Of a stretch of DNA of 64,000 bases, positions 1 to 61,363 are shown piece by piece. This DNA comes from Chara braunii (lineage: Eukaryota; Plantae; Charophyceae), in NCBI GenBank assembly GCA_003427395.1, contig BFEA01000022.1, forward strand, positions 3,447,532-3,511,531. Direction: 5' to 3'. A program made the position numbers and the translations under genes. The notes under the pieces were generated by a model that was given only the letters and a program-made list of their open reading frames with translations, was not told the DNA's origin and did not search any database. Position 1 is the first letter of the stretch; every line of letters starts with the position of its first letter.

Positions 1-19
1 AGAAGCAACAACTTTTTTT

Positions 20-15627: not shown

Positions 15628-15681
15628 GACTGTTTCGTCGGGATTGCACCGACTCGTCAGGGGGTTGCAACCCCGACAGTC
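15628..15681 (-). ncRNA. Type III hammerhead ribozyme, intact
   Basis: Minus strand reads GACUGUC / GGGG UUGCAA CCCC / CUGACGA / GUCGG UGCAAUC CCGAC / GAAACAGUC: all core nucleotides present, three perfect stems, GUC triplet. Confidence 0.93.
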
Positions 15682-15752
15682 AGTCACTCCGCCTGAACAT
15701 GGCGCTGAAGGCGCACATGAAGAGAGAGAGGGGAGGCAACGGGACTGCGACA

Positions 15753-15805
15753 GAATGTTTCGTCGGAATTGCACCGACTCATCAGTAGGTTGAACCTTGA
15801 CAATC
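15753..15805 (-). ncRNA. Type III hammerhead ribozyme, core intact with two stem mismatches
   Basis: Minus strand reads GAUUGUC / AAGG UUCAA CCUA / CUGAUGA / GUCGG UGCAAUU CCGAC / GAAACAUUC. Confidence 0.88.
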
Positions 15806-15856
15806 AGCCTCTGCGCCTGAACCCGGCGCCGATAGCGTCTAGGTTCAGGCACAGAG

Positions 15857-15861
<5 letters not shown>

Positions 15862-15927
<66 letters not shown>

Positions 15928-15960
15928 GAAGGGTACCTACCTACCTACCTACCTACTTAC
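15862..15960. repeat. (GA)n followed by (ACCT)n microsatellite
   Basis: Directly visible. Confidence 0.95.
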
Positions 15961-17769
15961 CTGGTTGGCCCCTCGTCGAAGACTCCAACAACAGGATGAG
16001 CAAAATCGAATGAATCTTGCACTAGAACATGGAAATATACACCCCCACATGTTGTCTTTCCTCCCCCCTCAGTCGAATTCAGGGTCTGAGCCCGTTCATT
16101 CGACGAAACAGGCAGCAGACTGAACTTCAGGTAAGTTTTTTTTTTTTTTTTTTTAGTTTTTTTTTTCCCTTCCCCATTTTGTGGCCATTAGACAGCAGAA
16201 TATGGGGGAAAACGGGAAAAGGGGCAGAAACGAGGCAACTGCCTCGTGAAAAACTATAAAAAAAAATAATAAATAAATATATATATATATATAGATATAT
16301 ATATATTGTCACAGAACTATTCACTAAGACCACAAGCACGTGAAGTAGAAGGAGAAATAAGATGAGCAAAGAAAGGAAAATGAAAGGATAGACAGACAAA
16401 GAGACAGACAAACCAGAATGACACAGAACAATGTCCTCTTATTCTTCGTTTCACTGTATCCTGAAGAAAGGATAAAATAAAAAACAAAAGCACATTGAAA
16501 TCATTCAGTTTCTCACTCTTCTTAACGCCTCATCCACCGTGCCTCTAACGTACGCGGCTCGCCACGTTGATGAAGTTGAGCGCGAGCTGCCCTCATCCCC
16601 GTATGCCATAACAGCCCACTTGCACGCTATGGGAAAGAGGCAGAGTGAAGAAAGAGGTGTTAAACACAAGGAAGAGAGGAGCATATATATAGTCTTTTCG
16701 ACTGTATGGGAGCAAGAAAGACTCCCACCTCAGTTTTGAGACGAGTGACTGGGGTCGCGAGATCTCAGATCTCGTGGCTCACAACGCACGTGTGGGGGAG
16801 ATGGAGAGAAAAGGGGAGAGAGAGGGAAACGAGGTGGTTGGGAGAAGGAGGACCTACTCCTCCCAACTTGACAACTGTCCTCCCCGTTTTCAGGGGAGGG
16901 CAGCAGAGGGAAGGAGTAGGTTGTTAACAGATAACTGCATGCTCCTGGCTCAAATCACGGCCAGGAGCATTGCAATTGAGGAGGTTGGGGTTTTTATTTT
17001 TATTTTTTTATTATTATTTTTTTTATTTTTATTTTTTTTGTGAGGAGACTTGTCCTCACGTGGTGCTAGCTCTGGCAGAAGTTGCCAGAGGTAACTATCA
17101 GGCTCCCGTTTTTTAAGGGAGCCTGGAAATTGAAGGGTCACTAAGGAAAAGGCTAGGTACAACCTTTTCCCCGATGTATCTGCCCTAGGAAAAGAGCCTA
17201 GATACATCAAACTGTAAGGGGTAGTATCTCTCCAACCCCTTACCAGAAAAATAAAAGAAAAACAGATTTACAAATGGCAGGAGCCCAGCTATCTCGTGAG
17301 ATTCCGAGATAGCTGGGAAAAAGAAAAAGAAAAAGAAAAAGAAAAAAGGGCAATTAAAGAAACTTCCCCACACTAAGGTTGTGGTTGTGGTGCGGTCACA
17401 GTCAACCCTGGATCCTGACCAGATCAAGGGCTCACAGTGAGCCCGCGATTTTTGCCTGGGGGCTGGAGTGACGTCCAACCCTCCTCAGCCACTATAAAAC
17501 AGACAGCTGCCCCACGAGCACACTTGAGTGCTGCTGGGGAGCTGAGGTGCTGCCTAGAGACTTCGAGGAGGAAGCTGGAGACCTTCAGAGGAGCGCGAGG
17601 AGAGGAGTTGGGCAGCCATAGCCAAGGCAGGGAGCACTCTGCTCTCCCCGCTTCTGGCTGGTGCTGGTCCCACGGGACGGACCCAGGGACGTGGCAAGGC
17701 TACGGCAGTGCGGCAAAGTGGAATTTGGGCCTGGAGCCCAAATTTTACTAATTTTGGCCTGCCATTTTT

Positions 17770-20195: not shown

Positions 20196-20872
20196 CACAG
20201 GTTTCAGGGGCCGTCCGAACATGTGCATGATCAGGGTACAAGCAGGAATTCCCCTACTCGTGTCATGAAAAGCCAGGCCGAAGAGGTCAACGTGCGTAAG
20301 AAGGTGGGGTTCGTGGTTGTGGCTTCCCCCCCACTGCTTCGCACTTGGAGAGTGTCAAAAGCCTAGGAGAACATTCCGAGCGGACCTGAGGGACTGCAGC
20401 CTAAGAGTAGCAGGAAATGCCACGAGCGCACGACCCACCACCCGTCGTTTCCTGCGAGAGATTTGGGTGTAAGTATGTTGCAGGGACCCAAAAGTGAGGA
20501 TGTTAAACTGAGCGGGACGAGGTCAAGGCGCAGTGGCGAGGCCGAGGGGTACGTGCGGCTGGTCATATGGGAAACCCACATTCAGGCTTTAAAATTCTCA
20601 TTTGGAATTTTGGCCGCTATCACCGAGATTTGTACTGGGCCCGCCTATCTGGGTCACGTGCTGCATGGCTTTGCAGCGGGTCTGCGCCCTACTGATCGTC
20701 GCGGCATAAAGAATCACCCCGACAGCCGATCATAGGTCGTGCGCCTCAGTGCCATACGTCTTTGAGGTTGATAGTTCAGCGCATGGGTTGTTACACACTC
20801 CCTAAGGGAGATTGACTTTAGTAACCAATGTTTCACTGCTTGTATCAGACGACATCTCTTCGCAGCTCTGGA

Positions 20873-22850
20873 TTAGTGCAAGTGGCGACTTGCGGAGAAA
20901 CGAGAGAGACTGATGAATCCTGGTTGAGAGTCGCGTCGGGTACACGCTGCATGGAGCAAGAGATAGCGGGGCGACGAATCAGGCACGATCGAAGAAAACA
21001 TATATCGCCCGATCCTTACCAGAATTGAGCGAGGGAGGAAGCGTTTTGGGGGTGTCAACCCCAAACGAGTCGGATAGAGAGCTTTGTTTGGTGGTCGGGT
21101 CAGAAGGATAGGAGATAAAGGAGAACGTGCGTGCGAAGGAGAGGTCGGAAGTTGGTTATGGCAGGGATAAAAGAAGGGGGACTTCACTCGATCCTGCACA
21201 GAATCGAGCGAACCAAAAAGTAGACTTGGGGTCTGTGGGTTCGGCGAGTCAATTGGTAATGATAGATTCGGACTAGGCACGATAATTCTAGCGGAGGAGG
21301 TTGGACAGGCTGTGCGGTGGTGACACGGGAGAAGAAGATAGTTGTTACTCATCTTTAATGAGATTGAGAGTAAAGAGGTGTAGGTGAGAGGCTTAGGAGG
21401 TAGGCGAACCCAATGGTGAAGACGGATTGAGAAATTGGTGGGTAGATCCGATAGTAAGGCAAGTTGTTACGTAAAAGTGGAGTGGACCTACTCGTATTTT
21501 ATGGACGGATTCGTTCGATTCTGCACAGCCTGTCGGAGGAAGTATTGTGGGGTCGGCCGCGGGGTTAGAGACCTACCTGCTGGCCAGTGTGCTGATCAGC
21601 CTATCGATGACAGTAGGCCCTCTCTGCCTCTCTGCACACACGGTAGGATAGTGGCGGACACATCCGCGTATATGCGGAAGATTCATTTACATATTAACGA
21701 TTGGATAATCACGACATGCAGTGTAGGGCCGACAGGTGCCTCTTGGAACGTGGTGTTGCTCTCTTCATAGTGGTTGGGATCATACTCCTCTAGATGGCAG
21801 TGCCCGTCATCGTGATCACCTCGGGCATGCAAGCCGGCCTCGAGGTGTTACCAACCACAGCGAGGCAAGATGCGCCCTCAATTTTGCACACCTGCGGAGA
21901 TGTGGCTTGGGTAAATGAGTTTGGTCGAACAACTGGGCAAGTGAAGAAGGAGACTTAGGGGTCCGATACTTATCTGCTAAAGGCAACGACCCGGTGGCTG
22001 AGGAGGGGACGTACCGTCGGCCAACATTCGGTTGGGGGAGGGGGACTAGAGTAAGAAAGCAGGGTGCGAGGTTGCGATCTTACCTGCCAGGGGGTGTAAA
22101 GCCCGACCATCAAGCAGGCCTTCAGCAGGCTAGCGCAGAGGCTGCAGTTCTGTCTGCTAGCCGATATGTTGTTTATCCTGTCAGCCTGTGCAGCGGCAGG
22201 GCAATCACGAAGGTGCAGACTTACCTGCGGACCAGTGCGCGTCCCACTCTGCAAACTAAAGTTGCGAGAAGGTATACTTGTTTGTTGGGAAGGGCAACGA
22301 GAGTCAAACGGCAACGGTTGCGGACTCACCTTTGGTGGATATCGCTGCTCCCTACTGAACAATACCATAGCAGGTCGACGGCGGGGTAAACACTAGGTTG
22401 TTGAACGGGGCATGGCTCATCCTACCAAGCCGAATAGTAGGTAGTGAGCCGCAAGGCTGCAGACTTGCGGAAGGGCTGAGATTATGAGTTGATTGAAGGG
22501 GTGTCTCTACTACAGTATGAGGGGTCGTCCAGGAATCAGCAGTTAGCAGTTTGATTTCTGTTTGACCAAGTTGATGCTGCATCCTTGGCCATCATTGCGG
22601 GGCCCTAAGGCGAATGAAGGAAACAAGGCCCTCTTCTAAGAGTTGAGTCAGTCCCTCTCCTGTATCTCGAGAGTCTGAAACCCCTCCTCCTGCCCTTCTT
22701 ACTCTAAGTCTAGTTTAGTTCTGAGAGGAAGGCGGCAGGTGGGATTGCAACCCGTAGGACTGCAGCAAGACTCTGTGGGGAGTTAGCCCACCGATTGTGG
22801 GAGCTCTGCCGGAACTTAGGAGGAGTTCTGGAGGCAGGGAACTGAGAGGT
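20873..22850 (-). pseudogene. Long decayed minus-strand ORF of unknown identity
   Basis: ORF 20873-21352 extends upstream in frame through isolated TAG/TAA codons; further pieces 21970-22368 and 22352-22582; the 22600-22850 block is paralogous to 27284-27535 with similar translation (KLDLE*E..EGF.TLEI). Confidence 0.4.
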
Positions 22851-24750: not shown

Positions 24751-24789
24751 GTCTACCTTGCATTGGTGTTACTTAGAGGTAGACCTAGG

Positions 24790-26480
24790 TCTAACTTGTA
24801 GGAGGACCTTGGGTGAGAATGTGTCATGGAGTTTTATTCTCCATACACTTATGCATTTAGCTTGGGTATTGGCATATCCTGTGTTATACGTCCTCTTGAT
24901 CGTTTGATTCAGGATCTGGACTAGATTCAGCTTGATCCCACGAGGATCATTTTTTGTTATCACTGATAACATGTCGGTTGTCGATTCGTCGGTCTACGAC
25001 TCAATTCTAATTCATCCTCAATACCCAACCTAAAAGGTTATAGCCCTGGTGGTTTCTATTGTTTTATTAAGGTTTTCACCCGGATTTTTATTGAATGACC
25101 ATTTAACAAAGGTACTGAGTATTTAATTATGGAAGGTTGGACAAAGGTTGGGGTTTGCATGGCTAAAGCAAGGGGTATGAGTATAGAGAATGGTTGAAGT
25201 TGAATCCGTGTAGTGTATAGACTTTTGGTTGACTCTTTGATGTGATTGCAGGTATGTTCTGTGGTTCGGACTCTGGATTTGACTACCTGCGATTACATAC
25301 ATATATATGGTTGTGAAGAGTCTCACTGTGATTGTGAGAAGTGATCGTCACATACTTTTTTCCCACTATCCATATATATTCACATACCTATGTTTGGGTG
25401 TTCACGTGGCCTGAGGGGTCCATGCTTAAGGGTTTAAGCGGGGTCGAGATTGAGAAAAGAAGGAAAACCCTCTTTATTGTTGTATGCTTCTTAAAGAGAT
25501 TTCTTAGTCGCATGTTAGTCTTGCGCCTGGATTCGAGGTCCTTGTCTAGGACATCCCAGGTCCTAGACTCTGCATGGAAGGGATCACCCCTCCGTGCAGA
25601 GCCTACTTGACTTGCCTACCAAGACACTCAACATAAAGGTCAGGGGTGCCGCGGAGGCCGCACGGTTGTTTCTTCAGCCGTGCAATATCGTGAAGGGGTA
25701 GACCTTCATGATATTTCGAGTTTGACACTTGAGTGTCATAAGCAGTACTCGAACCCACGAGGAACCGCTTGATTATGGACACTACATAGTATTTCATCAT
25801 CGCGATTGCTTGCATATTCATACATTGCTAGTCGATATGGGAAGGCCCTGCGTCCGCGCGGTTTTATACTAAGTCTCGCGCACGTTGCATATCCGATTTC
25901 CGCATCGAAAGTTATGGGATGACTATTGAAGAGACTAGGATTGTGTGCGTTGTTTTGTTTGTGTCGTTGTGTGTGTGTGTGTGTGTGTGTGTGTTTTAAT
26001 TTTTATATTTTTAAGTGGTGTACGCGTGGTGCGTGGGATGCGTCCTAGACGACGGGTTGCGCTTGGTACCTCAGCCCCCCAAGGCGCCGGTTCGCATGCG
26101 GGTCCGATAGAGGCGTAAAACCGTGCGTACCCCCTATGCTACAACGAACGAGAAACACCCTCGGTTGGTTCACCTCTGCGATTGCAGCCGATTAACTTTC
26201 GTATTATGGACTGGTAGCTCGGAGGGGATACGCCCACTGAAGGGAGGTAACAACTCTCTTAAGGTGGAGGTAAGTCTTGACTCGCGTAGTTCAAACGGAT
26301 TACTGGGGCAAAATTCCAGCCCTATCCTGTCGTAGGGGCTCGAGAGAAGTATGGCTGGTGCACTCGGCCGGAGCGGCTTGCGGAGGCTCCATATGCATTG
26401 CGACGAGGAGCATACCAACTCCTGTGTGACGCGGCCGGGAGGGTCCCGCCCCGTTTTGTGCAGTGCTGGACCGATGCACT
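24790..26480 (+). repeat. Large repeat-family segment paralogous to 60376-60950 plus 62101-63200
   Basis: Colinear similarity, e.g. GACTAGATTCA.CTTGATCC, GTGAGAAGTGATCGTCACATA, TAAGTCTCGCGC, GTGGGATGCGTCCTAG. Confidence 0.88.
26035..26480. other. Conserved structured non-coding module, copy 2
   Basis: Same ordered motifs as 19725-20195. Confidence 0.7.
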
Positions 26481-30279: not shown

Positions 30280-31125
30280 TGACAAAGCAGGAAGAAAGAC
30301 ATACAACTAAGCAGGGGGGCAGCATAGCAGCTGAGGAGCGTAGACAAGGGGGTAGTCCCCACATTCGGCACAGACCAAAGCAATCCATCACCTACTCCCG
30401 CCACAAGTTGAACCCTGCAGACTGTTGGCTCCCACCACCTGCTGAGCCAGGAAGACACTCTGATGAACGTCTGTCATCAGCCGCACAGACATACCGGACA
30501 GGGAGCCCCCCAACCCCCTCATAGCACAGTAGAAATTCCAAAGAAGGAACCACTTACAAGCTCAGACTTGGAAAAAGCAGGAAGAAATCCGAAGAAAGAC
30601 ATACAAGCAAGTGGGTGGGCAGCACAGCAGCAGAGGATTGCAGCCAAGGCAGTCCACACCTTCGACATGGGCCAAAGCAATCATTATCTACTCCCACCAC
30701 AAGTCGAACCCCGCAGACTGTTGGTTCCGACCACCCGCTGATCCAGGAAGACACTCTGATGAACGTCCATCATCAACCCCACACACATGCCAAAAAGAGC
30801 ATGTATGTCTTTAAGTACTTCTGTGGGCCCTTTTAGCCTATGGGTCGGTGCAACTCCGATGAAACAACATCTCATCATCAGGTTTTATGTTTTCTGCAGT
30901 TTTGTCTTTCATACTTGCGCTTTCCTTGCCTGATGCTTGTTTTCTTTTCCTTGCCTTGTGTGCTTTTGTCTTGTCTGACCTCTTGGCACCCCTGTGCCGT
31001 GCAGCCTATGTGTTGCCTCCATGCTTTTGCCTTGCAGTTTTTTTTACCCGCCTGCTTCTTTTCTGCTGCTTGTTCTCTTTTCACTGCCTGTTTGTTGCTA
31101 GAAATACTGTGTTTGCTTGTGTGTT
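30280..31125. mobile_element. Hammerhead-associated repeat related to 46030-47500; left arm inverted and tandemly duplicated (about 300 bp)
   Basis: 30290-30480 resembles 30590-30780 and the reverse complement of about 46126-46215; 30900-31120 resembles 46800-47450 (CAGCCTATGTGTTGCCTC). Confidence 0.6.
30838..30868 (+). ncRNA. Decayed hammerhead remnant (stem II plus GAAAC only)
   Basis: GTCGGTGCAACTCCGATGAAACAA matches the family; the CUGANGA box is corrupted (CTATGG). Confidence 0.6.
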
Positions 31126-36258: not shown

Positions 36259-39110
36259 ATGGATAATATTGAAACATTATACTGCAGAAGCCCCGTGCGG
36301 CGACAATGCGTGAAGACAATAGACTTAGATCTACGCTCGATTAACGTCAATGGCTTGGCCACGATTAACCCGGACCAGCATCAAGCCATTTGGGACCAGC
36401 TTCGGGGAGTGGGAGGAAGAAGCTGGCCGGATGTTATATGTGTATAGGAGACCCACTTGATGGACAAACCGGAACATAATAGAGCACACAAGATGGTCTG
36501 GCCCCACCTGGCTCTTAGAGCCCATGCCTCGAGGCCAGGATCTGCAGGGGTTGCAATCTGGATCCCCCCAGAATCCCGATTCCAGATGATTCATTGGGCA
36601 GCAAACGAGGTGGAGGGGCGATGGGTATCGGCATTGGGAACCCTAGAGTTGGACCTTATCTGTATTGTGTGTGTATATTCTCCCAACATGGTAGGGGAAC
36701 GAAGGGCCTTCTTGGAAGACCGACAGCACGCGTTCCAAACAGCATCCCGCTGATCATTGCTGAGGACTTTAATGCAGCTCCGAATAGATGGCGAGACATG
36801 TGGAACCCTCAAGGGGTCCCCCTGATCACTGCTGAGGACTTTAATGCAGCTCCGAATAGATGGCGAGACATGTGGAACCCTCAAGGGGTCCCCTCGGCTA
36901 TGGCGGAAGAGGATGAGAGGATGATAGAGAACATGTGTGAAACCCTCTCGATCTTTGATACCTTCCGCCGCCTTCATCTTGAGGACAAGACCTTTACATG
37001 TATAAAAGACAGTGATCCGGCAAGGCTATCCAAGTCAAGGATCGATCTGATTTTTATTTCTAACGACCTAGAAGGGGTCTTGCGATGATGGGTCATTCTG
37101 CCACGCAGTCCGCACCCGGGCTTAGACCATAAAACGTGCGGCCTGATACTGACACTAAGGAAAAAGTCAGACCAAGGACCCGGATTCTATAAACTTAACA
37201 CATCCTTACTGAAAGACTATCAATTCAAGATATGATCTGAGATGAATGGCATTTCTGGCACCAACAAAAACCCCGTTTTGACTCCCTTTCAACCTGTTTC
37301 AATAATGGTCTACTCTTTCTAGCACGGAAGTGTAAAGAATGGTCAAAGAAAAAGGCAGCCTTACGACAACAACAAGAAATGTCTACCCACCAGGGACTAC
37401 TAGATCTCGAGCAACAAATAGATTCACAACATTGCACAACTTCTATTCAAGCAGTAAAAGACCAACTCCTTCGATTCGCTCAACATAGATGGCAGGGTAT
37501 TAGGATAAGGGGGAAGCTAGCTAAATTTACTCAAGAAGCTACGATGGACACACACTTCTTTAGTATGGCAACAGCTCGGCCACGACGAACAGTGATAGAG
37601 GCTCTCTACGAGCTAAATAGAGGAGAGGAGGCCATAGTTTCGGACACTGCACACTGTACACTAATAGTGAGGAGTTTTTTGAAACAACTTTATACCTCCC
37701 AAATCCCAGCACAACGAGGAGAAGCGTGGACCAGGGACTTGGAAGACTTCCTTGCCCCCATAGACAGATATATGTCCCGGCAACAATGGGCAAAATTGGA
37801 AAGACCCCTTACGAAGGAGGAAGTGTGGACAACACTCATGCAGATGAAGGAAGAGAAGACACCAGGTATTGATGGTTTTCCTAAGGAATTTTGGGAAGAA
37901 ATGTGGGGAGACTTGAGCTCGGACCTGTGGGAGTATTATCAGAAAGTATGGGAAGAAGGGGAAATGGGGGAAGTGGTCAGGACCGGAGTGTTGTCAATAT
38001 TGTATAAGAAATGGGACAGAATGAATATACGGAACTACAGGCCTCTCACGCTTCTCACTGTCGTGTACAAGATGCTCTCTAAAGCACTTGCAAATCGGAT
38101 GGCCGGAGTTCTGGAAGATGTGATCCACCCCGCCCAGACAGACTTCATGGCCAGTAGGAATATACATGAAAATATCCTGCTAGTGAATGAAATTGTTAGC
38201 CTGTCTCAGAGGAATCGAACAAATGTGGCCATCATATTCATAGACTTTGAAAAGGTGTATGACCACGTAGATTGGGACTTCTTAGACAAGTGCCTAGAGA
38301 AAATGAACTTTGGACCACACTTTAGACGGTGGGTCATAATCCTACACAAAAATGCTTCCACCTGCGTGCAGATCAACGGGTCGGTGGCCCCGGCATTCGA
38401 GCTCCAGCGCTCGGTTAGGCAAGGGGACCCCATTGCCCCCTTCCTCTTCTTAGTAATAATGGAGGCACTATATGCCAACCTGCGAAGTAACAGGGATCTC
38501 AGGCGGATCAGGATCACAGATATCCCAGAGGAGGTTGTGCCAATATGCTCTCTCTTTGCCGATGACCTCACAATTATGGTAGAAGCTAGCATAAGGAACA
38601 TGCCGGAGATACAAGCCCTGATGACCCGCTTTTGTAGACTGTCTGATATGGCTGTCAACTGGGGACAAAAGACAGTAGGCTGGTGGTTACACCATCAAGG
38701 GGGAAGACCCCCCGAAAATCCACGTATCACATGGTTGCCCTTGGATGGCCCCCTTAGGGTTTTGGGGGCGTTGGTGACAGCAAAAGGGAGGCCCCCCACT
38801 AATGATGAATGTTTAGTGACCCCAGCGCAGGCAAAACTGACAAGTTGGAACAACAAACACTGTTCACTGATCGGGCGAGCCCTAGTTATGAACAATGTGA
38901 TATTAGCCACCCTATGGTATAAGGCAATTCTTTGGCCAATCACCAATGGGGGGTTAAAAGCGCTTAAACGACAACTGGCGGCCTTGTTATGGAGAGGGGA
39001 TAGTGCTTCCCCCCATGCTATTAGTCGGGTCGCATGGGAGTCGGTGGTGCAACCCAAGGTTGGGGGGGGGCTAGGGATTATTGACCCCGCTACGCAAAAT
39101 CAGGCTTTGA

Positions 39111-39173
<63 letters not shown>

Positions 39174-41214
39174 ACTGCCCGTTTGGGAGATAGGGGCGTT
39201 GGTATAAGCAGACGCCTCTATCTCCCCCGGGGAGGCTCCATCTAGTAGTGGGGAGCAACACCTGCTGGAAAACGGGTCCAACGTCCCTTAACAAAAACAT
39301 TGATTGCCTTCTGAAGACCTCGTCATCATTCTACCAGCATTGATTGCCCTGCGAACAGGGGATTAACTGCGCGAGAATATGAGTAACCAGAGAGGGGGGA
39401 AGAAGGAGCCTCTTCGGCCCTGCTGCTGGGCGCCCGAGATGCATGACGACCTAGCTCCCATCCCCCTGCAGATACATCCAATTGATCTTCTGCAGCTCTT
39501 ATGCAGCTTAATGACTACGAAAATTATGCCCCCCCACTCACTCTGGCCCTAAACCACAGAAGAGTCTGCGATGGATCCAACACATTATTTTTTCTATATG
39601 CTCGTCATGGGTACCCCTTGCCCTAAGGCAGATTGCGGCCCTGGCTCTGGAGGCACCTTCGGAGATCGACCCTGTAGTTTGGTTGGAGGACAGATACTGG
39701 AAGATACCAAGGAAGTATAGGAACGGAGATCCGGCGGATGAGCACTGGTTATACCTTTTGAGAACATGGAGGAGACTCCCACTGCCGGACCGACGGGAGC
39801 CAGAAAGGTGGGAGGAGGTGTTTAGACAACCGCTTTTTGGTAACCGACGGATCACGAACTCCATGGGCCAAGTAAGGAACAACTCTGACCCTTTCTGACG
39901 AGGATGGGTGAAACATGGGGCCAGGAGAGTAGGTGACCTCTGGGATGCCTCTTCTAAAGAATGGAAAAGCGTGGATAGAATAAGGGGTTGGCTTAGGTAC
40001 TGCCACCAAACACAACCAGCGTTGGAAGAATTGATTGAGAGTTTCCCTCTTCAATGGTACTATATCCTGCGAAAAGGCCCGAGCATACAGGAAGGGGACT
40101 GGGTGGGTCTGCCTGGCCAAGGGGAACAAGTGGGAAGGATGCAAACTATTGAGAGAGAGGCATCTCTGATAAAGCTCTTCTCTGTGGAAAAGGATGGAAA
40201 GTTACAAGGGAGCCGGCAGCCGTTAGTATGGAAAGGGAAGGGGGAGGTCTATCGTATCAGAGTGTTGGAAGATGGTCAGGGATGGAGAGCTTTCAGGCCG
40301 ATGACCCCAATTGAGGACCTCCCCCTCGACCCCGATGAATGACAATGGTCCACAAACGGCAGGCCCAACCCACGACGACGGGGCAGGGGGAGCGAAGGAA
40401 AGCCGATAGCATTACTTACTATGAAAACCAAATCAGCGTATCAAATGATGAGACCAAAACGCAGCCTGAGGGATGTAGTGGAGGAGAGGTGGCACCGACG
40501 TCTCAATGTGGATACGGCCCTGCTTAAGCCAATAAAATGGTTTAGGGATTTTAGGATGAGGCCAGCGAAAATTTCCGCCCTCCAATGGCAGATCTCACAC
40601 CGATGTTTGCCAACTAACGACTGGCTAATCGACCACACAAGCCTGGAACAGCAGGGCCGGGCATTACCATGGTGCCAGAGTTGCCTTCAGAGTTTTCCGA
40701 GCCAGAAAAACCCTGAGACAGTGGAACATATTTTCCTTCAATGCCCTGCCGCGATGTTACTGTGGCGAGGACGGGACAAAATCTGGCGACACATGATCCC
40801 GAACTCAGCATGGCCATGGGAGTGGAGGACCATCCTACTGGGGCATTGTCCGCAGGGGTATACAAGTAGTTTTGAGGGGCCCTCTATTAAAAAAAAAAAA
40901 AAAAAAAAAAAAAGAAGAAGAAGAAGAAGCTGGGAAGGCGCTCTATCCTATGGGTTATTTGGTGGAGAAGATGCGTCCTAGCAATGGAGGGGGCTCGGGT
41001 GGAAGAGGGGGAGGTTAAGGAACAGTTGCGGACATTGGTACAGTCCGAGATATTAGCACAGCGGCATGCCGCAAAGAAACTGTTGGACCAAGCACACTCC
41101 AGGAGCGACATGGATAAGATTATCTCTCGTTATGGGGAAAACTGGTTGGGAGGAAGGAGGGGGGGTTGGGTGGCAGAATTGAAATGGATGGGGGACGCAC
41201 CGAGGTCACAGTAG
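36259..41214 (+). pseudogene. LINE ORF2: apurinic endonuclease, reverse transcriptase and C-terminal zinc finger; disrupted
   Basis: SINVNGL, DVICV*ETH, CVYSPN, EDFN and SRIDLIF; KTPGIDG, RNYRPLTLL, IDFEKVYDHVDW, VRQGDPIAPFLF and LFADDL; CQSC..ETVEHIFLQC. Confidence 0.93.
39115..39561 (-). mobile_element. 5'-truncated LINE (or LINE-tailed SINE) copy inserted antisense into ORF2
   Basis: Poly(T) to 39165; the reverse complement of 39225-39290 matches the host LINE 3' UTR at 41835-41890; candidate TSD GAGCCT/GAGTCT; ORF2 reads QALSL|RWIQH across the insert. Confidence 0.85.
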
Positions 41215-44568: not shown

Positions 44569-46027
44569 TGTTGCATGCTGCGCCTGCACACGCGGGCCAT
44601 TTTCCAGGCCCTGCGTCCTTCAGGCCGAAAGCCTGAAATCCAGGGCTTACAGGCCCCGTGGCTGTTTCAGGCCNNNNNNNNNNNNNNNNNNNNNNNNNNN
44701 NNNNNNNNNNNNNNNNNNNNNNNNNNNNNNNNNNNNNNNNNNNNNNNNNNNNNNNNNNNNNNNNNNNNNNNNNNNNNNNNNNNNNNNNNNNNNCGTGGCT
44801 GTTTCAGGCCGAAAGCCTGAAATCCAGGGCTTACAAGCCCCGTGTCTGTTTCGGCCCGAAAGCCTGAAATCCAGGGCTTACAGGCCCCATGGCATTTCAG
44901 CCTGACAGCCTGAAAACAAGGGCCTATAGGCCCTCAGGCTTTAGGCAGAAGCTACCTGGGAACTTTCTGGAAGCTTCCCCAGGCTTCATCCAGAAGCTAC
45001 CTGGAAACTTCCCGGAAGCTTCCTCAGGGTCTAGCACATTTGGGCATTGGCAAGAGCAGCCTCCTGGACGAGCCAGCACTATATAAGACTGGCCCGCCCT
45101 ACAGGCAGAAGGCAGTTGTAGTCTTCAGGATTCAGGAGCAGCACTCTGGAGGGAGCGCTGCAGAGTAGTAGTGGCGTTAGCTTGTAGCCTTCAGCGCTGG
45201 GCGCAGTAGGTAGCTGTAGTCTCCAACGTTGGGCGCCATAGCTAGATAGTACTAGAGAGAGAGAGAGATTGGGCGGAGGCCAGAGGCACTTACCTGCAGC
45301 GCCGTTGCTCCAGCTTCGTCTTCGAGGTACCTGCAGCACAGCGCCAATACCACAGGTCAGTGAGAGAGAGTTCTTCTTCTTCCTCTTCTCAGTCCACCAT
45401 CTCCTTCTCCCCCTCTCAACATCTGACTTTACTGCATCTGCAGACTACGAGAGAAGAGAGACAGAGCTTGGTGACATCGGATCCAGACTCGACTTTTGGG
45501 ACTTCAGACATGGCAACGAGGGATTATTTGGGATTGGTGACAAAGACTTGGTGTTGACGACATTCCCATCTCTCTCCCTCCTTTCGTCTGATTCCTGCCT
45601 CTTCGTCTGTGTATGTCTGGACTTGGCGCTTTCTTCCTGTGTACAGCGCCAGGCTCCTTCACACCTGGTGATGGATATGATGTATGTTTGGTCTGAGTTC
45701 AAACATTGATTGGGCTAGTTATTAGCATTCTAGCATTCTGCTTCGCTACTTTGTACTACGTGAGTGAGGTCAGTCCCGGTCAGGTCAGTCTTTGTATTTA
45801 AGTCTTCCCTGCGCTATTCAGCACCATTATGTATGTATGAGAATGCACATTGCTTGTCGAGATTCTATTCGCTCCGCATTGTCCATTCAGTCCTTTTTAT
45901 CACATTGCAGATTCTCGGTTATTGCGTACATTGCATATCTGTTCATGTAACATTTTTGTGTGCCGAGCTGAGCACCCCTAAGCAGTGCCAAATAGTCGGT
46001 CATTCCTCGTTTGGGCTGCCTGCAACA
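44569..46027 (+). repeat. 3' LTR containing a 47-bp tandem array (collapsed into an N gap) and a TATA box near 45080
   Basis: 7-bp terminal inverted repeat; unit CAGGCCGAAAGCCTGAAATCCAGGGCTTACAGGCCCCGTGGCTGTTT on both sides of the gap; CTATATAAG. Confidence 0.88.
44674..44793. other. Assembly gap (120 N)
   Basis: Run of N. Confidence 1.
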
Positions 46028-46029
46028 CT

Positions 46030-47500
46030 CCTAGGGGGGCCGCTCGGTTCGGTATGGCTGTCCGTCCTACGAGTGACGACAGATTTCGTCGGAGCGACTC
46101 CATGGCTCAGTGGGTGATGTGAGCGGGTGATGTGCCGGTTTGGTTTGTGTTGGATGTATGGGCTGCCTCTTCTGCAGTCTGCCGCTGCCTTGCTGCCCGT
46201 TCCGCTTGCTTTGCAGGTCATTCTTGGCAAGCTGCTGTGTTTGCTGTGTGTTGAGGCCGTGTGGTTGGTGTTCCCTTGCGCTTCGCTGCTTCACTGCCTT
46301 GCTGCCTATCTGCAGGCTGTGCTGTGCCTTATGTGTCCTTTGCGTGCTTGCCTTGTAGTTTGGTGGCCTTGCTGGTGTTGCCTCATGCTTTGCTGCTCCA
46401 CTTGCCCTGTTGTTCCTTGCAGTTGCTCCGGCAGTGTTGCCTGGTGCTTCACTGAGTGGGGTTGCTTGCTGCCATGTGTGTGCCTGCCTTGTTGGTGCTT
46501 GTTCGTGTTGCCCTGTGCTTCACTGCGCGGTTGCCGCGCTGCGCGGTTGCTTGCCATGTCATTCCTTGCAGTAGTCTTCGGCGTTGAGTAGCCATATTGC
46601 ATCTGCAGCGTTGCCTGGTGCTTCACTGGGTTGCTGCCCGCTGCTGTGTTCCGTTTGGGGACAGTCTTCCTTCAACAAGGGTCAAAGGGTGCATGACCCA
46701 AACCATCAATACGGGGATTCCGCAGATTGTCGAGGGTTCAGCCTCCTGATGAGTCGGTGCAACTCTGACAAAACAATCTTCCATCCGTTCCGTCTAGCCT
46801 ATTTCATTCATTGTCTTTACCTGCCTTGTGTGCTTGTATGTTGTCTGTCCTCCTGCCTCCCCCAGCGCCCTCCAGCCTATGTCGTGTGTTCTCTTTCCCC
46901 CCCGCCTGCCTTCCCCAATGCCACCCAGCCTATGTGCTGTGAGGTCATTTCTTACCTGCTGCTTGTTGTCTTTTCCTTGTCTTGTATGTTGGTGTGTTGA
47001 CTGCTTGACTCTTGTTTTAGGTTTGTGAGTCTGTTTTGAAGTGACCACTCTAGCCTACCATCGAGTCAAAACAGTGCTGCATCCCTATAGACTAAGACTG
47101 TTGGTGTGTCGTCTGAATGCCCGCCCCCCCCAATGCCATCCAGCCTATGTTACTTGTTGTCTTTTCCCTGCCATGTGTGCTTGTATGTTGCCTGCCCTCC
47201 TGCCTCCCCCAATGCACTCCAGCCCATGTTGCTTGTTGTATTTCCCTGCCTTGTGTGCTTGTAGGTTGTCTGCCCTCCAGCCTGTGCCACTTGTTGTCCT
47301 TTCCCTGCCCTGTGTGCTTGTATGTTGTCTGCCCGCCCAACTTCCCTAATGCCCTCCAGCCTATGTGTTGCCTCACTGCTTTCCTTTCTTGCCTTTTGTC
47401 TGGTCATTTCTTACCTGCAGGCTGCTGCTTGTTGTTTTTTCCTCCCTTGTGTGGCGGTGTGTTGACTGTATCCAATAGAGTAAGTAGGTGCACGATGAGG
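46030..47500. mobile_element. Hammerhead-associated non-coding repeat with TG/CT-rich degenerate tandem arms
   Basis: Hammerhead at 46724 and a remnant at 46077; recurrent units CCAGCCTATGT and CCTTGTGTGCTTGTATGTTG; related to 30280-31125. Confidence 0.6.
46724..46779 (+). ncRNA. Type III hammerhead ribozyme, probably inactivated (GAAA to AAAA)
   Basis: AGAUUGUC / GAGG GUUCAG CCUC / CUGAUGA / GUCGG UGCAACU CUGAC / AAAACAAUCU. Confidence 0.87.
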
Positions 47501-50930: not shown

Positions 50931-50954
50931 CATGTCATTGCTGCCTATGAGCGG

Positions 50955-56758: not shown

Positions 56759-56817
56759 CATAGTCAATTCAACATGATCAATATGCAATGCATATTGATC
56801 ATGTTGAATTGACTATG
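56759..56817 (-). terminator. Perfect 28-bp inverted repeat at the psbM 3' end (plastid 3' stem-loop)
   Basis: CATAGTCAATTCAACATGATCAATATGC-AAT-GCATATTGATCATGTTGAATTGACTATG. Confidence 0.85.
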
Positions 56818-56920
56818 AATCACTTTGACTAGCTGTTTTTACATAAAGTATTAATAAAAAGGCTGTTGGGATAATAATAAAAAGTGTCGTTGCAATAAAA
56901 GCAAGAATATTAACTTCCAT
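56813..56920 (-). pseudogene. psbM: Photosystem II protein M, complete 35-aa frame (NUPT copy; too short for the ORF track)
   Basis: [35 protein letters not shown]. Confidence 0.95.
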
Positions 56921-57306
56921 AATTTTTTCAATATAAACAGAAAATAAATCTAAAATAGACAAGAATGTAGATTTATTTTTTGTTTATATGTATATTCTTT
57001 CATTCTCTATTACATTAATTATTACATAATCTCTCTAATGTATATGTATATGAACTCTAAAATGTATATGTATATGAATTTCATTATTTATGATGTTATT
57101 GATTCTTCTTTTTACATTCAGTACAATCATTTATAATAAAATTCCCTCTGGCCGTCATTATTGGCATGTTGCCGATTAGTATTATTGATTTCATATTGAT
57201 ATCATAAATACATTTTGTTTTTTCAAATGAAGGAGTAACTTAGAATTTAATTAAATATTCTACTGTAAATGTTAATACATTCTTACATTTTTTTTTTATA
57301 TTAGTT

Positions 57307-57491
57307 AGTATCAGCTGTAAATCCACCTGTAAGATAATCATGCATAACAATAGGCATACCTAATTCTCTTGCACATTGTACTCTCTTAAACATTTCTTCA
57401 CAAGTTCTTGCAGTAGCATTTAAATAGTGACCTTTAATTTCTCCAGTTTCTGCTTGAGATTTATAAATTGTTTCTGCTACAAATAGGAATC
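57307..57491 (-). pseudogene. rbcL: Rubisco large subunit internal fragment (about residues 217-278)
   Basis: [61 protein letters not shown]. Confidence 0.97.
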
Positions 57492-60057
57492 CTTCCACAA
57501 GACGTTGGCTCGTATGAGCCGCCTGTACGTCTGGCCAAAGCACAAGGACTTTGTGAACGACTATGTCGCAGAGTGTCCCACCCGTCAGGAGGTGAACAAT
57601 GCGAACCACTTGCCTTATGGTTTGCTCTAGCCTCTTCCTATCCCTGAGGGTAGTTGGCAGTCCATCTCGATGGACGTTATCAGTCCTCTTCGTCCTCCGA
57701 CCCCCCGCGGTCATGATGCTATCCTGGTCGTCGTCGACCGCTTCACGAAGCGTGCACGNTTTGTTCCGTGCCGCTATGCCATCAGTGCACGTGAGGTCGC
57801 CGACATCGTGTTTGGCGAGTCGTGCGTGACCACGGCTTACCTCTGAGNATCATATCTGACCGTGACCCGCGCTTTACCAGCTGATTCTGGCGACGGCTTC
57901 ACGAGGTTTACGGCACCCAGCTTCGCTTCTCCTCGTCTTACCATCCTCAAACTGATGGTCATACTGAGATCACGAACAGGACTCTCGGAGATATTCTCCG
58001 AAAGATTATTCGTGACGACCAGCAGTGGGATCTCCATCTTGCCCACGCGGAGATAGCCTACAACCACGCCGTCTCGCCAACCACGGGGATGTCGTCTTAC
58101 TATTGCGACCTCGGCTATCACCCTCGTGTTCCCGCAGACTTCCTCAGACAGTCACAGATGCACCCCAACACGAGTTGTCTCGCGGTGGATGATCAGGTTG
58201 CACACATGACGTCGATCATGAAGACCGCACATGAGCACATAGCTGCTTCCCAGACTCGCATGGCAACACGTGCGAACCGATCGAGGATGGATCATCCATT
58301 CAAAGTCGGTGATGATGTGCTTATCGACTCCCGCCACTTACAGCTTGAAGCATACACGCTTCGCAAGTTTCGGTGTCGCTTTTTAGGCCCATGCCGCATC
58401 CTCCAGGCCATCGGTTCTGATACGGCATCTAGCCCGGTCAGCTTTCGTGTGAAGCTGTCCGACTACCTACGCCAGGCTCGTGTGCACGATGTCTACCACG
58501 TCTCGTTACTGCGTCCTTACCGCAGACCGTCTGAGCGTTTCGCTGGACGACCATACGAGCGCCCTCCACCCATCATGGTGGACGACCACGAGGAGTTCCT
58601 TGTTTCAGACATCATTGGTCGCCGAGTCACCGACGACAACCCTCCCCACGTCGAGTATCTCGTACGTTGGAAGAGTTACCCTGATGAGGAGGCTACCTGG
58701 GAGCCCCTCGAGCACTTGCAACACACTCGCATCTTGGTGCGTGCCTATGACCGTGCTCGTCGTGCTTGGTTCACTGCTCCTCCTCCTTGTCCCCCGACTG
58801 AGGAGACCGCTGAAATCGAGCCTGCTCCATCTGAGGCAGACCTTCAGCAGCAGCCGGATGCTTCTGAGCGTCCACAGCGCACTCGTCGTCGTCCTGTTCG
58901 ATACGACAATTGACTCTGACTTACCTTGCCACGTCTTTGACTTCTCAGTACTCCATCCACTCCAGTTTTGCTACTTCAACTCGTCGACGTTGCGGCTCTT
59001 CCTCGACGGCATTCCGGACTTCTCATTGTAGACGTCATCGGCAGCTTCATGGACTTCGTCACGATCAGCTCTGCCTACTTCAGACGTCATCACTCTCTTA
59101 CCACTTTACCCTGTACAGTACCATGGTTGTGTCGCATGATGGTCTCCCTTTAGCCGGTTTCCTTTGAGTTGGGCTCTCCCTTGGTATACGCATAGGCATC
59201 GGGACCGTAGCGTTGCCCTGGCTTCCCATCTTACGGATCTAGCTCTGACTTCCCCAACTTAGGAGTCATTTGCATGATTCCCTTACTCATCACCTTTCTA
59301 CCCTCTGTCGGCCCTCACGCCCTAGTTAGGCACCCCCGCATGCTTCATCTAGGTGCGCCCAGTATACCAGGCTCCCTTGTTCCCTTGCATGGTCGACCCT
59401 CCATAGCGGTCACCCTTTATCCGAGCATTACCCGCCCTGATGGTCTATCTGTTAGGGTCATTGGTTCTGTTCGCTCCCAGTTCCCTGCCCTCATTGAGCC
59501 TGATGACATGTGTCTCTCTGTCACTATGTGTGGATGCCCTTAGGAGTTTTCGACCCCTAGGCTGCATTCGCCACCCTCAAAGATCATCCCACCCTTTGGT
59601 TTGCGACACACTTCTCATGTGACATATGGTTCACTTGTTGTTGTTTGTTGCTATCGGACTGAGGCTACTGCCTCTGACATTTCTAGGATTTAGTTGTTCT
59701 GCTTTTGTTGTTCTTAGGACTTATACACTAGTTAGTTGTTCCCAGACTGATGCTACTGTCTCCAACATTCTAGGATCTAGTTGTTACTACTTTCTGCTTT
59801 CCTATGACATGTATGCTAGTTAGTTGCTTCTGCTTTCCTAAGACATGTATGCTAGTTAGTTCCTTCTGCTTTCACTTAGGCTGTTAGCAGTGACATTGCT
59901 GTTTTGTGACATTTTATATCCTAGGTTGCATCGCATGGACTCAACATGGAGCTTGCTCCGCATCCTAGACTACTCGTGTTTTCTTTTCTTTGGTAGAGTT
60001 CCGTTTCTTGGAGGAAGCGTGCTCGTATCTAGGCGATCCATCACAGGCCGAGGATCG

Positions 60058-60366
60058 TGTAGCGGACCTCTGGTTGGCCTGTGAGTCCAGCCCCTTGGCC
60101 TGTTCTCACAGGCCTATGTTTTATTCGGGGCAGTCCAGTCCAGGCCGATACCTCTGTCGGTACCAGCCATTCCAGTCCAGTCTCGTCAGTCCGCTGGGGT
60201 ATACCCCAACAGTTGTCTGTTTTCGAGATCATTCTACACTGGCACGATTTGGAGTACGTGCGTTGGAGTCCTGCGTGGGAGCTGCGTTGTGCCATCTCGC
60301 TCCTCCCTCATCCTCCATCTCCATCATCATCCCAGGCGGAGCACCACACACGGTGGGTCCGCTACA
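60058..60366 (+). repeat. Probable 3' LTR (309 bp)
   Basis: 11-bp perfect terminal inverted repeat TGTAGCGGACC...GGTCCGCTACA; host repeat resumes right after; PPT unclear. Confidence 0.7.
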
Positions 60367-60968
60367 GCTTAAGACTTAGTTTGCAGGAGTACCTTGAGTG
60401 AAAATGTGATATGAAGATTATTCTTCATGAACTCATAGATTTAGCTTGGGAATTGGTCTGTCTTGTGTTACAGGTCCTCTTGATAATTTGATTCAAGATT
60501 TTGACTAGATTCAACTTGATCCTACGAAGGATCATCTTCTGTTATCACTTATAACAGGTTGGTTGTCGATTCGTCAGTTTACGATTAAACTCCAATCCAC
60601 TTCGCCACTCAACCTAAAGGTTGTAGTCTTGTGATTTGAAATGTTTTGTTGTGTTTTCGCCCGGACTTTATTTAAATGGGCATTTAAGAAAAGTACTGAG
60701 TATTTTATTTTGAGAGTTGCACAAAGAGTAAGGTTTGTATGACTAAAAGCAAGGGGTGTGAGTGCAGAGAGTGGTTGAAGTTGACCCCGTGTAGTGCATG
60801 GAGTTTTGGTTGAATCTTTGATGTGATTGCAGGTAAGTTTGGTGATTCAGACTTTGGATTTGACTGCCTGCACTCACATACATATATATATGGTTGAGAG
60901 GAGTCCGACTATGATTGTGAGAAGTGATCGTCACATATTTATAACCCTTTATATATATATATATATAT

Positions 60969-61363
60969 CCGTAGGCAGAGAGAGAGAAGAGGACAACAAA
61001 CGAGGGGTTGTGACAAACTGTTTCGTCGGAGTTTCACCGACTCATCAGGAGGCTGAACCCTCAACAGTCTACAAAATCCCCTCACTGATTACACTGTAAA
61101 TGATAATCTACCTCAACCAAAATCAAAGTAGACTATCACTCACCCACACCATATGGAAAACTCTACGGACTGTCGGGTCATACCCCATCACAAGCCAGCA
61201 AAACATCCACGAAACAAAGAAAGGTCTGTCACAGCCAAAAAATACACTCCAGACACGCCACTGACACTAGAGGCACAACATGGCCGTCTAGTAACGGCCC
61301 CGACCACTGCCGCTCGACCTGACCGGAAAAAAACCGTAGCAGGAAGCTAGGGAAGTTGTAGCA
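60969..61363 (-). mobile_element. Hammerhead-bearing insertion within a (TA)n tract
   Basis: Flanked by TA runs; absent from the paralogous site near 25370. Confidence 0.7.
61015..61070 (-). ncRNA. Type III hammerhead ribozyme with GUU triplet
   Basis: Minus strand reads AGACUGUU / GAGG GUUCAG CCUC / CUGAUGA / GUCGG UGAAACU CCGAC / GAAACAGUUU. Confidence 0.9.

Follow-up and report, generated by a model that had tools for sequence, protein, structure and literature searches.

Hammerhead ribozymes are known in two forms of retrozyme: those of plants are of type III and lie in LTR retrozymes, and those of animals are of type I, in units that lack LTRs and are tied to Penelope-like elements (PMC4918200, PMC7229834). 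We asked where the hammerhead motifs in the genome of Chara braunii, a streptophyte alga near the root of the land plants, stand with respect to these two forms, and what moves the units that carry them. The locus studied is a stretch of 64,000 nucleotides (contig BFEA01000022.1, hereafter the window), in which an original prediction had placed six dispersed copies of one non-coding family, mobilised in trans, perhaps by Penelope-like elements or by LINEs. Copies were also collected from six other C. braunii loci, so that the complete sample spans 377 kb (317 kb without N). Taken together, the results make it probable that these type III hammerheads sit in the 3′ part of short, non-coding, abundant retroposons of Chara whose reverse transcriptase is supplied in trans, most likely by a Penelope-like element.

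The window contains four type III hammerheads and one relic

Four of the motifs, called A, B, E and F, are real type III hammerheads. Copy A (15627-15682, minus strand) matches the Rfam model RF00008 (Hammerhead_3) with 47.3 bits (E 2.9e-7), copy F (61015-61070, minus strand) with 45.8 bits, copy B (15752-15806, minus strand) with 39.9 bits and copy E (46724-46779, plus strand) with 39.1 bits. All four narrowly miss the gathering threshold of 48.5 bits, at E values of 3e-7 to 6e-5. R1, a covariance model that we made in this analysis, gives them 90.8 (A), 83.1 (B), 88 (E) and 93.4 bits (F), and a 29-nt pattern of core plus stem II is matched four times in the window against 0.00 times expected from 100 shuffles. 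In the cmscan alignments helices I and II are closed by loops and helix III is open, which is the type III architecture; all copies fit the type III model, and a search for the type I hammerhead gave no match at E values up to 10. The conserved core (CUGANGA, GAA, A15.1-U16.1 and H17) is present in A, B and F and incomplete in E and in a fifth copy, C. Stem II with loop 2 is not specific to the family: unrelated metagenomic replicons and phage-like contigs carry the identical 29 nt.

The two remaining copies of the prediction fared differently. Copy C (30793-30877, plus strand) is a genuine decayed relic: it scores 23.7 bits with R1 (E 5e-4), aligns locally to the family with p<0.001 and retains stem II and GAAAC, the CUGAUGA box and stem I being gone. 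Copies C and E have related 3′ flanks, with downstream repeats in common. The sixth copy, claimed at 46077 (D, 46060-46135, minus strand), was not confirmed as a hammerhead, since it has no catalytic core and no R1 match at E values up to 10. Its fold is ordinary (z +0.46), and its local similarity to the family is marginal, with p=0.003 for copy F and no significance for copy E. Two repeats, at 30411-30479 and 30707-30764, are homologous to it and may be very old relics. An assembly gap (44674-44793), with a Ty3 fragment on one side and a 47-nt tandem repeat on the other, is at least 1.3 kb from every hammerhead copy and interrupts none.

Covariation of the stems had been part of the original prediction. 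Base pairs changed on both sides do exist, but they are too few to carry weight: the four window copies have two such pairs, which 57 of 500 shuffles equal, and seven distinct full copies from the 377 kb have three, one per stem, with a score that 9 of 500 shuffles reach. Across these seven copies 92.7% of the cells are paired, compared with 36-51% in slid controls. An intact core was found in only five of ten full-length ribozymes, and another eight copies are without stems I and III.

The copies fall into at least three subfamilies with a common ribozyme module

The sample holds 17 copies in 377 kb, about one per 20 kb. They do not form the single family that had been proposed: there are at least three subfamilies, which have in common only the ribozyme and some 20 flanking bases, and their bodies upstream of the ribozyme are mutually unrelated. 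As expected from the prediction, the copies are associated with microsatellites, one of which lies within 150 nt of 14 of the 17 copies, compared with 7.8% of random positions.

The first and best defined subfamily, represented by copy F, is a unit of about 400 nt that targets (TA)n. The second, to which copies A and B belong, is the "CUGGCACA-tail" type, which occurs at (CA)n or (CT)n and is named after the start of the copy A tail. Copies A and B form a head-to-tail array (15545-15861, minus strand) of about 2.3 units of 124-125 nt, adjoining (CT)31 at 15862-15923 on its 5′ side. Each comprises a 45-nt hairpin, the hammerhead and a tail rich in C and U, except for the third, which is hairpin only, and the units are 80% identical over 91 nt. 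In copy A (C17, N7=C) cleavage is predicted between 15675 and 15674, and the minimum-energy fold is an alternative hairpin of -27.5 kcal/mol, not the ribozyme fold. In copy B stem I is weak, with an A·A at its base, and stem III contains a U·U; the fold z-score is -0.31, and cleavage is predicted between 15799 and 15798. From cleavage site to cleavage site the monomer measures 124 nt, and it folds in an ordinary way (z -1.5), equally in sense and antisense. Besides this array, pairs of truncated copies occur in tandem, and most copies of the sample are single.

The third subfamily, copies E and C, is embedded in pyrimidine-rich tandem repeats, which in the case of copy E have lengths of 59-137 nt and reach to about 47470. 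G12 is replaced by A at 46770, and copy E is therefore presumably inactive. Copy F has U17 and a predicted cleavage site between 61063 and 61062, and the minimum-energy fold of its 60-nt motif is the ribozyme fold (z -2.2). The motif recurs in the sample, identically at L024:43451-43521 and with one unread base as the only difference at L024:2133-2203.

The (TA)n unit is a short, abundant insertion

Copy F lies in a non-coding insertion of 392 nt (60969-61360, minus strand), made of a body of about 290 nt, the hammerhead and a CU-rich tail that ends early at 60969. This filled site has an empty paralogous counterpart in the window, at 25379/25724. The 3′ junction is (TA)9 at 60951-60968, and matching (TA)n stands on the 5′ side at 61383-61406. 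Directly 5′ of the body we found a displaced tail piece (61361-61382, minus strand), composed of the last 13 nt of the family 3′ tail and (TA)4 GC, which on comparison with the full tails of 11 copies from loci L020, L023 and L024 gives a junction of permuted or tandem type. The element has no ORF, as predicted, and no Pfam match. It is abundant: 21,786 DNA contig pieces were placed on the 1-kb stretch around F, the summed contig depth on the element is 0.14-1.7 million (mostly 0.5-1.7 million) against 1e4-1e5 in the flanks, and it drops to near zero at both (TA)n junctions.

Could such units be LTR retrozymes of the plant type, or solo LTRs, moved by Ty3/gypsy elements? Plant retrozymes share with the Chara units the type III ribozyme with stable stems and loops, and both are non-autonomous and non-coding with highly structured RNA (Cervera et al. 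2016, PMC4918200). Ty3 elements are moreover everywhere in the sample, and one copy (L020:74687-74756) lies 300 nt past a Ty3 3′ LTR. This copy, however, is not part of the LTR, from which a (TC)n tract separates it, and the 5′ LTR lacks a ribozyme. Whereas the plant ribozyme is located in two LTRs of about 350 bp, in elements with a PBS of the tRNA-Met type, a PPT and 4-bp target duplications (PMC4918200), none of these was seen in the Chara units. Self-comparison found no long direct repeats flanking any copy, in line with the absence of LTRs noted originally, and neither PBS nor PPT was evident on reading the 392-nt unit. The whole F insertion amounts to only these 392 nt, and the insertions are in microsatellites, not at 4-bp duplications. 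We consider an LTR origin very improbable.

The insertion anatomy resembles that of Penelope-like elements

The starts of 12 F-type copies were located relative to the cleavage site. Three lie upstream (-305, -115 and -70), one (L023:5976-6049) is at +1, exactly at the cleavage site, and the others are downstream at +8, +9, +11 (four copies), +30 and +57. The recurrent +11 start was possibly inherited from one truncated master instead of arising anew each time. Some truncated copies stand in tandem (L020:23783/23941 and L024:43228/43451), and others are inverted, head-to-head at L020:8981/9075 and tail-to-tail at L024:18415/18643. All 11 full tails of the sample are joined to a hammerhead and none to a coding body. 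At the 3′ end the copies have either (TA)n or a T-run with (CA)n after it, and no poly(A) was found. The original view of abundant retroposed units without coding capacity is borne out.

The schistosome Sm-alpha element is a SINE-like, non-coding dispersed retroposon of an animal host, with an active type I hammerhead and a head of the Pol III type. The Chara units are likewise dispersed, SINE-like and non-coding with a hammerhead, of type III instead, and one might suppose that they depend, in the manner of SINEs, on the abundant L1-like LINEs. The window indeed contains a LINE with APE, RT and zf-RVT domains (36.5-41 kb), and LINEs occur commonly across the sampled loci. The units nevertheless lack a poly(A) or A-rich 3′ end, contain T-runs and have no tRNA-like head; no Rfam match to a SINE-type head (tRNA, 5S or 7SL) was found inside them, and ARAGORN found no tRNA in the window. 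Neither partial copies, inverted or in tandem, nor a tail piece out of place are features of target-primed insertion by LINEs, and in Penelope-like elements 5′ truncation is frequent, as are partly tandem and inverted copies and insertion into microsatellites (PMC8557442); the Chara copies show all of these hallmarks, together with the tail piece. Because there is no poly(A), because 5′-truncated copies occur in tandem and inverted and because a tail piece is displaced, the anatomy fits Penelope-like elements better than LINEs, and mobilisation by LINEs appears improbable. Of the two mobilisers originally put forward, the Penelope-like one is thus the better fit, as a putative partner.

The original prediction had called for a search for copies linked to an RT or GIY-YIG ORF. 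Neither a GIY-YIG ORF nor an RT of the Penelope-like kind is near any of the 17 copies in the 377 kb, and the same sample contains no autonomous element with the same tail. The only Pfam domains in the larger window ORFs and in about half of those of the other loci are those of LINE, Ty3, Plavaka/Ulp1 and hAT. ORFs of the window are 84-94% identical to Ty3 proteins of C. braunii and 60-64% identical to its LINE proteins.

C. braunii does possess Penelope-like elements with hammerheads, Chlamys-2_cBra with a canonical one at its 3′ end and the PLE-X families (Craig et al. 2021, PMC8557442). The question therefore arises whether our copies are only heavily 5′-truncated 3′ ends (pseudo-LTR parts) of these described elements. 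Our copies and the described elements agree in host genome, in the position of the hammerhead close to the 3′ end and in being 5′-truncated, partly tandem or inverted and inserted in microsatellites (PMC8557442). The described elements are coding and several kb long, and by description the ORF-less Chara units of 125-400 nt are set apart from them. Further evidence argues against simple truncation. None of the 17 copies in the 377 kb adjoins a Penelope-like ORF; over the F body the DNA depth stays level instead of declining steadily toward the 5′ end; the junction of copy F, with tail end, (TA)4 and body start in succession, implies a unit of about 400 nt; the subfamilies do not share a body; and Penelope-like hammerheads are described as minimal type I (PMC7229834), those of the Chara units being full type III. 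On balance, we regard truncated ends as rather unlikely.

The (TA)n unit encodes a G·U-rich hairpin and is transcribed

In the F unit an upstream arm (61118-61236, minus strand) pairs with 61006-61117, a segment made up of the hammerhead and its flanks. Of the 95 pairs of the hairpin 26 are G·U, and the folding energy is -153.8 kcal/mol for the sense strand and -91.3 for the antisense strand, compared with -118.8±6.2 for shuffles (z -5.6). With the ribozyme structure enforced, the region reaches -132.1 kcal/mol. The family majority letters give -183.1 in sense and -102.2 in antisense. Mismatches between the arms are wobble-compatible in 18 cases and of the A·C type in one, and this bias points to a constraint on the sense RNA. 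However, strand-specific mutation could yield the G·U excess instead of selection.

Oligo-dT RNA reads cover the F unit at a depth of hundreds to thousands, with first mates 4-8:1 toward one strand, which corresponds to sense RNA if the library is, as we assume, of the usual dUTP type. There is no pile-up of RNA read ends at the cleavage site 61063|61062. Back-joined RNA reads at the F unit were absent from the two oligo-dT runs, libraries of a kind that catches circles poorly, and back joints occur in DNA contigs only. The 3′ part of the unit is in 5-20-fold excess in RNA, which is largely explained by expressed 5′-truncated genomic copies, the reads continuing into (TA)n or (TG)n flanks.

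These features led us to consider that the unit of about 400 nt might be a genome-encoded, viroid-like quasi-rod RNA, in which pairing of the sense strand alone is maintained by selection on the RNA, the hammerhead is off within the rod and multimeric or circular templates are copied into DNA. Templates of this kind would account for the permutation of copy F and for copies in tandem. As in hammerhead viroids and viroid-like satellite RNAs, a type III hammerhead is buried in a long, G·U-tolerant, quasi-rod fold that competes with catalysis. The viroids, however, are free circular replicons, whereas the Chara unit is genomic DNA in thousands of copies with no sign of circles or of RNA-to-RNA replication. 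We hold the viroid-like interpretation to be unlikely.

Discussion

We return to Chara retroposons served in trans by a Penelope-like enzyme as the interpretation that we favour. According to this scenario, the elements would be transcribed, chiefly from the sense strand, and their RNA would be reverse-copied into microsatellite DNA by an RT supplied in trans, with Chlamys or PLE-X as the most likely donor. Recognition at the 3′ end would then rest on the common module of hammerhead and tail. We propose that the long hairpin of the (TA)n unit keeps the ribozyme inactive, so that it folds only once the hairpin opens or when the upstream arm is absent; self-cleavage would then set the 5′ end of short copies.

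The Chara units recall the metazoan non-LTR retrozymes, which are transcribed, abundant units of 150-450 nt without coding capacity, lack LTR, PBS and PPT, are partly arranged head-to-tail and have likewise been proposed to depend on Penelope-like elements (Cervera and de la Peña 2020, PMC7229834; Li et al. 2026, bioRxiv 10.64898/2026.07.22.740005). The metazoan ribozymes, however, are of type I, form mainly long tandem arrays and give rise to demonstrated circular RNAs, whereas the Chara units are of type III, mostly dispersed, 5′-truncated and inserted in microsatellites. We saw no circular RNA from them, in contrast also to plant LTR retrozymes, with their circles of 600-1000 nt.

The Chara units thus join the ribozyme type of plants and viroids, and a viroid-like buried fold, to a Penelope-like mode of insertion as seen in animals. 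It has been suggested that retrozymes, and perhaps hammerhead viroids, originated from Penelope-like elements (PMC5680766), and our results would bear on this idea, provided that partner and RNA forms could be established. Should the viroid-like interpretation be true, the link so far missing among Penelope-like hammerheads, plant retrozymes and hammerhead viroids would be found in a streptophyte alga. For Chara braunii itself, the units constitute a large unannotated class of repeats and account for many of the microsatellite-linked repeats of its genome.

Hammerhead ribozymes of the window

At the curated Rfam gathering thresholds the window contained no match at all; its hammerheads surface only under E-value reporting, the gathering score of RF00008 being 48.5. 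Reported in this way, four type III hammerheads matched RF00008 with E-values of 3e-7 to 6e-5, namely copy A at 15627-15682(-) with 47.3 bits, copy F at 61015-61070(-) with 45.8 bits, copy B at 15752-15806(-) with 39.9 bits and copy E at 46724-46779(+) with 39.1 bits. A 29-nt pattern of core and stem II matched the same four sites, with 0 expected from 100 shuffles. The covariance model that had been proposed as a check was built from copies A, B, E and F, which it scores at 83-93 bits. Run without filters, it also recovered a decayed copy, C, at 30793-30877(+) (23.7 bits), confirming the relic announced near 30838(+); in copy C the CUGAUGA box is gone, while stem II and GAAAC persist. The original prediction counted six hammerheads, and these five stand. 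The sixth, copy D at 46077(-), lacks a catalytic core, shows marginal local similarity and has no match to our unfiltered model; its homologues are two 300-nt repeats, at 30.4 and 30.7 kb, which may be ancient relics. The catalytic core, as read from the sequence, is complete in copies A and F, with a U at the cleavage position of F. Copy B has a complete core with one mismatch each in stem I and stem III, and copy E, in which G12 is replaced by A, should be catalytically dead. An assembly gap (44674-44793) separates a Ty3 fragment from a tandem repeat; it is at least 1.3 kb from every copy and has no bearing on these results.

In copy A, loop 1 (UUGCA) is complementary to loop 2 (UGCAA), and in copies of the F type UUCA in loop 1 is complementary to UGAA in loop 2, which may point to base pairing between the two loops, co-varying from one subfamily to the next; the whole motif of copy A favours an alternative 12-bp hairpin of -27.5 kcal/mol. 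About 350 nt from the tandem hammerheads A and B, on the opposite strand, a U6 snRNA-like sequence at 15099-15196(+) scores 38.2 bits (gathering 44). Conservation is good over its 3' two thirds, whereas the 5' stem-loop has diverged, and the sequence is followed by a T-run; it may represent either a variant gene or a pseudogene. A 137-nt eukaryotic LSU rRNA-like stretch at 20742-20878(-), below gathering at 32.6 bits (E 5e-4), is probably an rRNA-derived fragment in a repeat.

A generic module in several subfamilies

The stems had been said to covary, and double changes are indeed present, although slight: two among the four window copies, a result equalled in 57 of 500 shuffles. Seven distinct full copies drawn from 377 kb of Chara braunii DNA give three double changes, one per stem, with pairing at 92.7% versus 36-51% in slid controls, and their covariation score was reached by 9 of 500 shuffles. 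The shared stem II does not serve as a family mark. The same stem II and loop 2 occur at 19 loci in metagenome and viral contigs whose relatedness to the Chara copies is confined to 29-35 nt of the ribozyme; these loci were therefore rejected as family copies, and they show the stem II/loop 2 sequence to be generic.

Two groups among these contigs deserve mention in their own right. Eight JGI metagenome contigs (L001, L005, L007, L009, L010, L011, L013 and L016) form a circularly permuted family of ~1.78 kb, 80-99% alike, whose terminal redundancy of ~120 nt implies a unit of ~1.66 kb. Their type III hammerhead has the stem II/loop 2 of the Chara copies, no ORF exceeds ~155 aa, and the contigs resemble circular replicons with a ribozyme, comparable in size to delta-like agents. 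The second group comprises four contigs of 19-21 kb filed as viral (L008, at 8190-8244; L015, at 3440-3494; and the IMG/VR contigs L017 and L019), in which a type III hammerhead scores 53.6 bits, above Rfam gathering, with the stem II and loop 2 of copy F.

Copy number was estimated with six further stretches of assembly GCA_003427395.1 (L020-L025, 313 kb), which were reached via Chara proteins from homology searches and not picked for ribozymes. Together with the window (377 kb), they hold 16 copies at E≤1e-3 plus relic C, a density near one per 19 kb once N is excluded. The predicted association with microsatellites is upheld: 14 of the 17 copies have one (at least five dinucleotide units) within 150 nt, versus 7.8% of random positions. 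The notion of a single dispersed family is not, since the copies are unrelated apart from the ribozyme, the ~20 nt that precede it and the first part of the tail. The "family" is thus a set of subfamilies with a common generic type III module. The first, typified by copy F, sits in (TA)n. The second has a tail beginning CUGGCACA and includes copy A, the copy at L021:31117, which terminates in a T-run and (CA)35, and many RNA reads. Copies A and B make up a head-to-tail array of 2.3 units, each 124-125 nt long, adjoining (CT)31; the 124-nt unit between them was considered as a mini-circle and discarded, its fold being unremarkable and equal in sense and antisense. The third subfamily, that of copies E and C, lies within pyrimidine-rich tandem repeats of 59-137 nt.

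An E-like ribozyme at L020:74687 has a different body, which starts at a (TC)n tract just outside the LTR of a Ty3 element; this position led us to reject an LTR retrozyme there. The element itself, a Ty3/gypsy at L020:74600-83300(-), has two LTRs 92% alike, and its 3' LTR is directly followed by (TC)24, then by a 290-nt body that holds the dead E-like hammerhead, and then by part of a second Ty3. The locus is a nested insertion at a microsatellite.

Insertion anatomy of the F-type unit

The boundaries of the F-type unit come from a comparison of filled and empty sites. The segments 60381-60962 and 62457-62599 match 24796-25379 and 25724-25866, respectively, and relative to this 25-kb counterpart the 61-kb locus has ~1.15 kb extra within a (TA)n tract, made up of the 392-nt hammerhead unit (60969-61360(-)) and a second, unrelated repeat. 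That repeat is stacked in the same tract at 61407-62117(-). Rich in A, it includes a run of A29 and an internal duplication of 180 nt, and its GC-rich ends are hairpin-forming; 13 nt of F-type tail lie in opposite orientation beside (TA)n at ~62089-62116. Summed DNA contig depth is 0.14-1.7 million on unit F (0.5-1.7 million over most of it), 1e4-1e5 on its flanks and almost nil at both (TA)n junctions.

Eleven further F-type copies supply the full 3' tail, which terminates directly in (TA)n and never in a poly(A) end; copy F is missing its last ~27 nt. Directly 5' of the body of copy F, at 61361-61382, stand the final 13 nt of the tail followed by (TA)4 GC. This is a permuted junction as from tandem or circular templates, or equivalently a Penelope-like "tail". 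Counted from the predicted cleavage site (61063|61062 in copy F), the 12 copies start at -305, -115, -70, +1, +8, +9, +11 (four copies), +30 and +57, the copy at L023:5976 beginning with the first base past the predicted cut. The whole ribozyme is kept in three F-type copies, with an identical intact sequence and U17. Truncated copies occur in tandem pairs (L020:23783/23941 and L024:43228/43451) and in inverted pairs, head-to-head at L020:8981/9075 and tail-to-tail at L024:18415/18643.

A possible mobilising partner

Chlamys-group Penelope-like elements have been described in Chara braunii (Craig et al. 2021, PMC8557442); one type, Chlamys-2_cBra, ends 3' in a canonical hammerhead, and hammerheads are borne as well by the PLE-X families, which lack the endonuclease. 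The hallmarks given there are frequent 5' truncation, partial tandems that yield pseudo-LTRs, a neighbouring 5'-truncated copy in inverted orientation, a short terminal "tail" on one side and microsatellite insertion. Compared by description, the tandem and inverted truncated F-type pairs reproduce these hallmarks; short non-coding hammerhead units are undescribed in that work (PMC8557442). Animal non-LTR retrozymes, argued to stem from Penelope-like pseudo-LTRs (2026 preprint, 10.64898/2026.07.22.740005), differ in carrying type I ribozymes (PMC7229834), whereas the Chara copies are type III.

Mobilisation in trans had been ascribed to either Penelope-like elements or LINEs. The insertion anatomy favours the former, but a link of copies to an RT/GIY-YIG ORF was not found: Pfam detected no Penelope-like RT or GIY-YIG domain in 69 ORFs or segments, comprising the larger ORFs of the window and about half of the larger ones of L020-L025. 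The domains found were those of LINEs (APE, RT, zf-RVT), Ty3, Plavaka/Ulp1 and hAT. A Penelope-like partner is favoured but unproven. The reading as a non-autonomous retroelement holds, every full F-type tail in the sample being joined to part of a ribozyme, and none to a coding body. A tRNA-derived SINE head was rejected, as ARAGORN found no tRNA in the window.

An L1-like LINE at 36500-41000(+), with APE, RT (604-aa ORF) and zf-RVT, is disrupted by frameshifts and carries a T52 run (39114-39165) in its 3' part. At 2-4000(+) a DNA transposon has left the C-terminal part of a Plavaka (KDZ-type) transposase (383-1075) and an Ulp1 (C48) protease domain (3348-4001). The LINE RT ORF is 60-64% identical to two other Chara braunii proteins and the Ty3 integrase ORF 84-94% identical to many; every other protein is far more distant.

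Expression and a buried ribozyme

In two oligo-dT RNA runs of the same species, unit F is covered at depths of hundreds to thousands. First mates lean 4-8:1 toward the + strand, which, provided the library follows the common dUTP scheme, indicates sense RNA. In RNA, the last ~80 nt of the unit exceed the body 5-20-fold in depth, against only ~1.5-fold in DNA. Much of this step comes from reads continuing into (TA)n/(TG)n at 61034-61062; the 3' excess is mostly due to expressed truncated copies. Neither a pile-up of read ends marking cleavage nor back-joined reads marking circular RNA were seen on unit F in the two runs. The back joints that did appear were confined to DNA contigs and reflect tandem copies.

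As RNA, unit F folds at -153.8 kcal/mol versus -118.8±6.2 for shuffles, and its antisense at only -91.3 kcal/mol. In the predicted structure, 61118-61236 pairs with 61006-61117, the ribozyme and its flanks, in a long imperfect hairpin in which 26 of 95 pairs are G·U. Aligned as plain DNA, one arm and the reverse-complemented opposite arm show 18 wobble-compatible mismatches and one of the A·C kind. Swapping 15 bases of F for the majority letters of genomic and RNA reads brings the sense strand to -183.1 and the antisense to -102.2 kcal/mol. Because the majority letters lower the sense energy, the hairpin is a property of the family, of which copy F is a slightly decayed member. Enforcing the catalytic fold in unit F costs ~22 kcal/mol; in the copy at L024:2133, whose upstream arm is truncated, the minimum-energy structure is the catalytic fold. 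No comparable long hairpin formed when copies of the E, A/B and L021 types were folded. In this respect the F-type unit is reminiscent of hammerhead viroids and of retrozyme RNAs, whose ribozyme has a stable rod as its competitor. Either RNA-level selection or a strand-specific mutation bias may underlie the arrangement. This hairpin, in which the ribozyme lies buried and which favours the sense strand, is the most interesting detail of the analysis.
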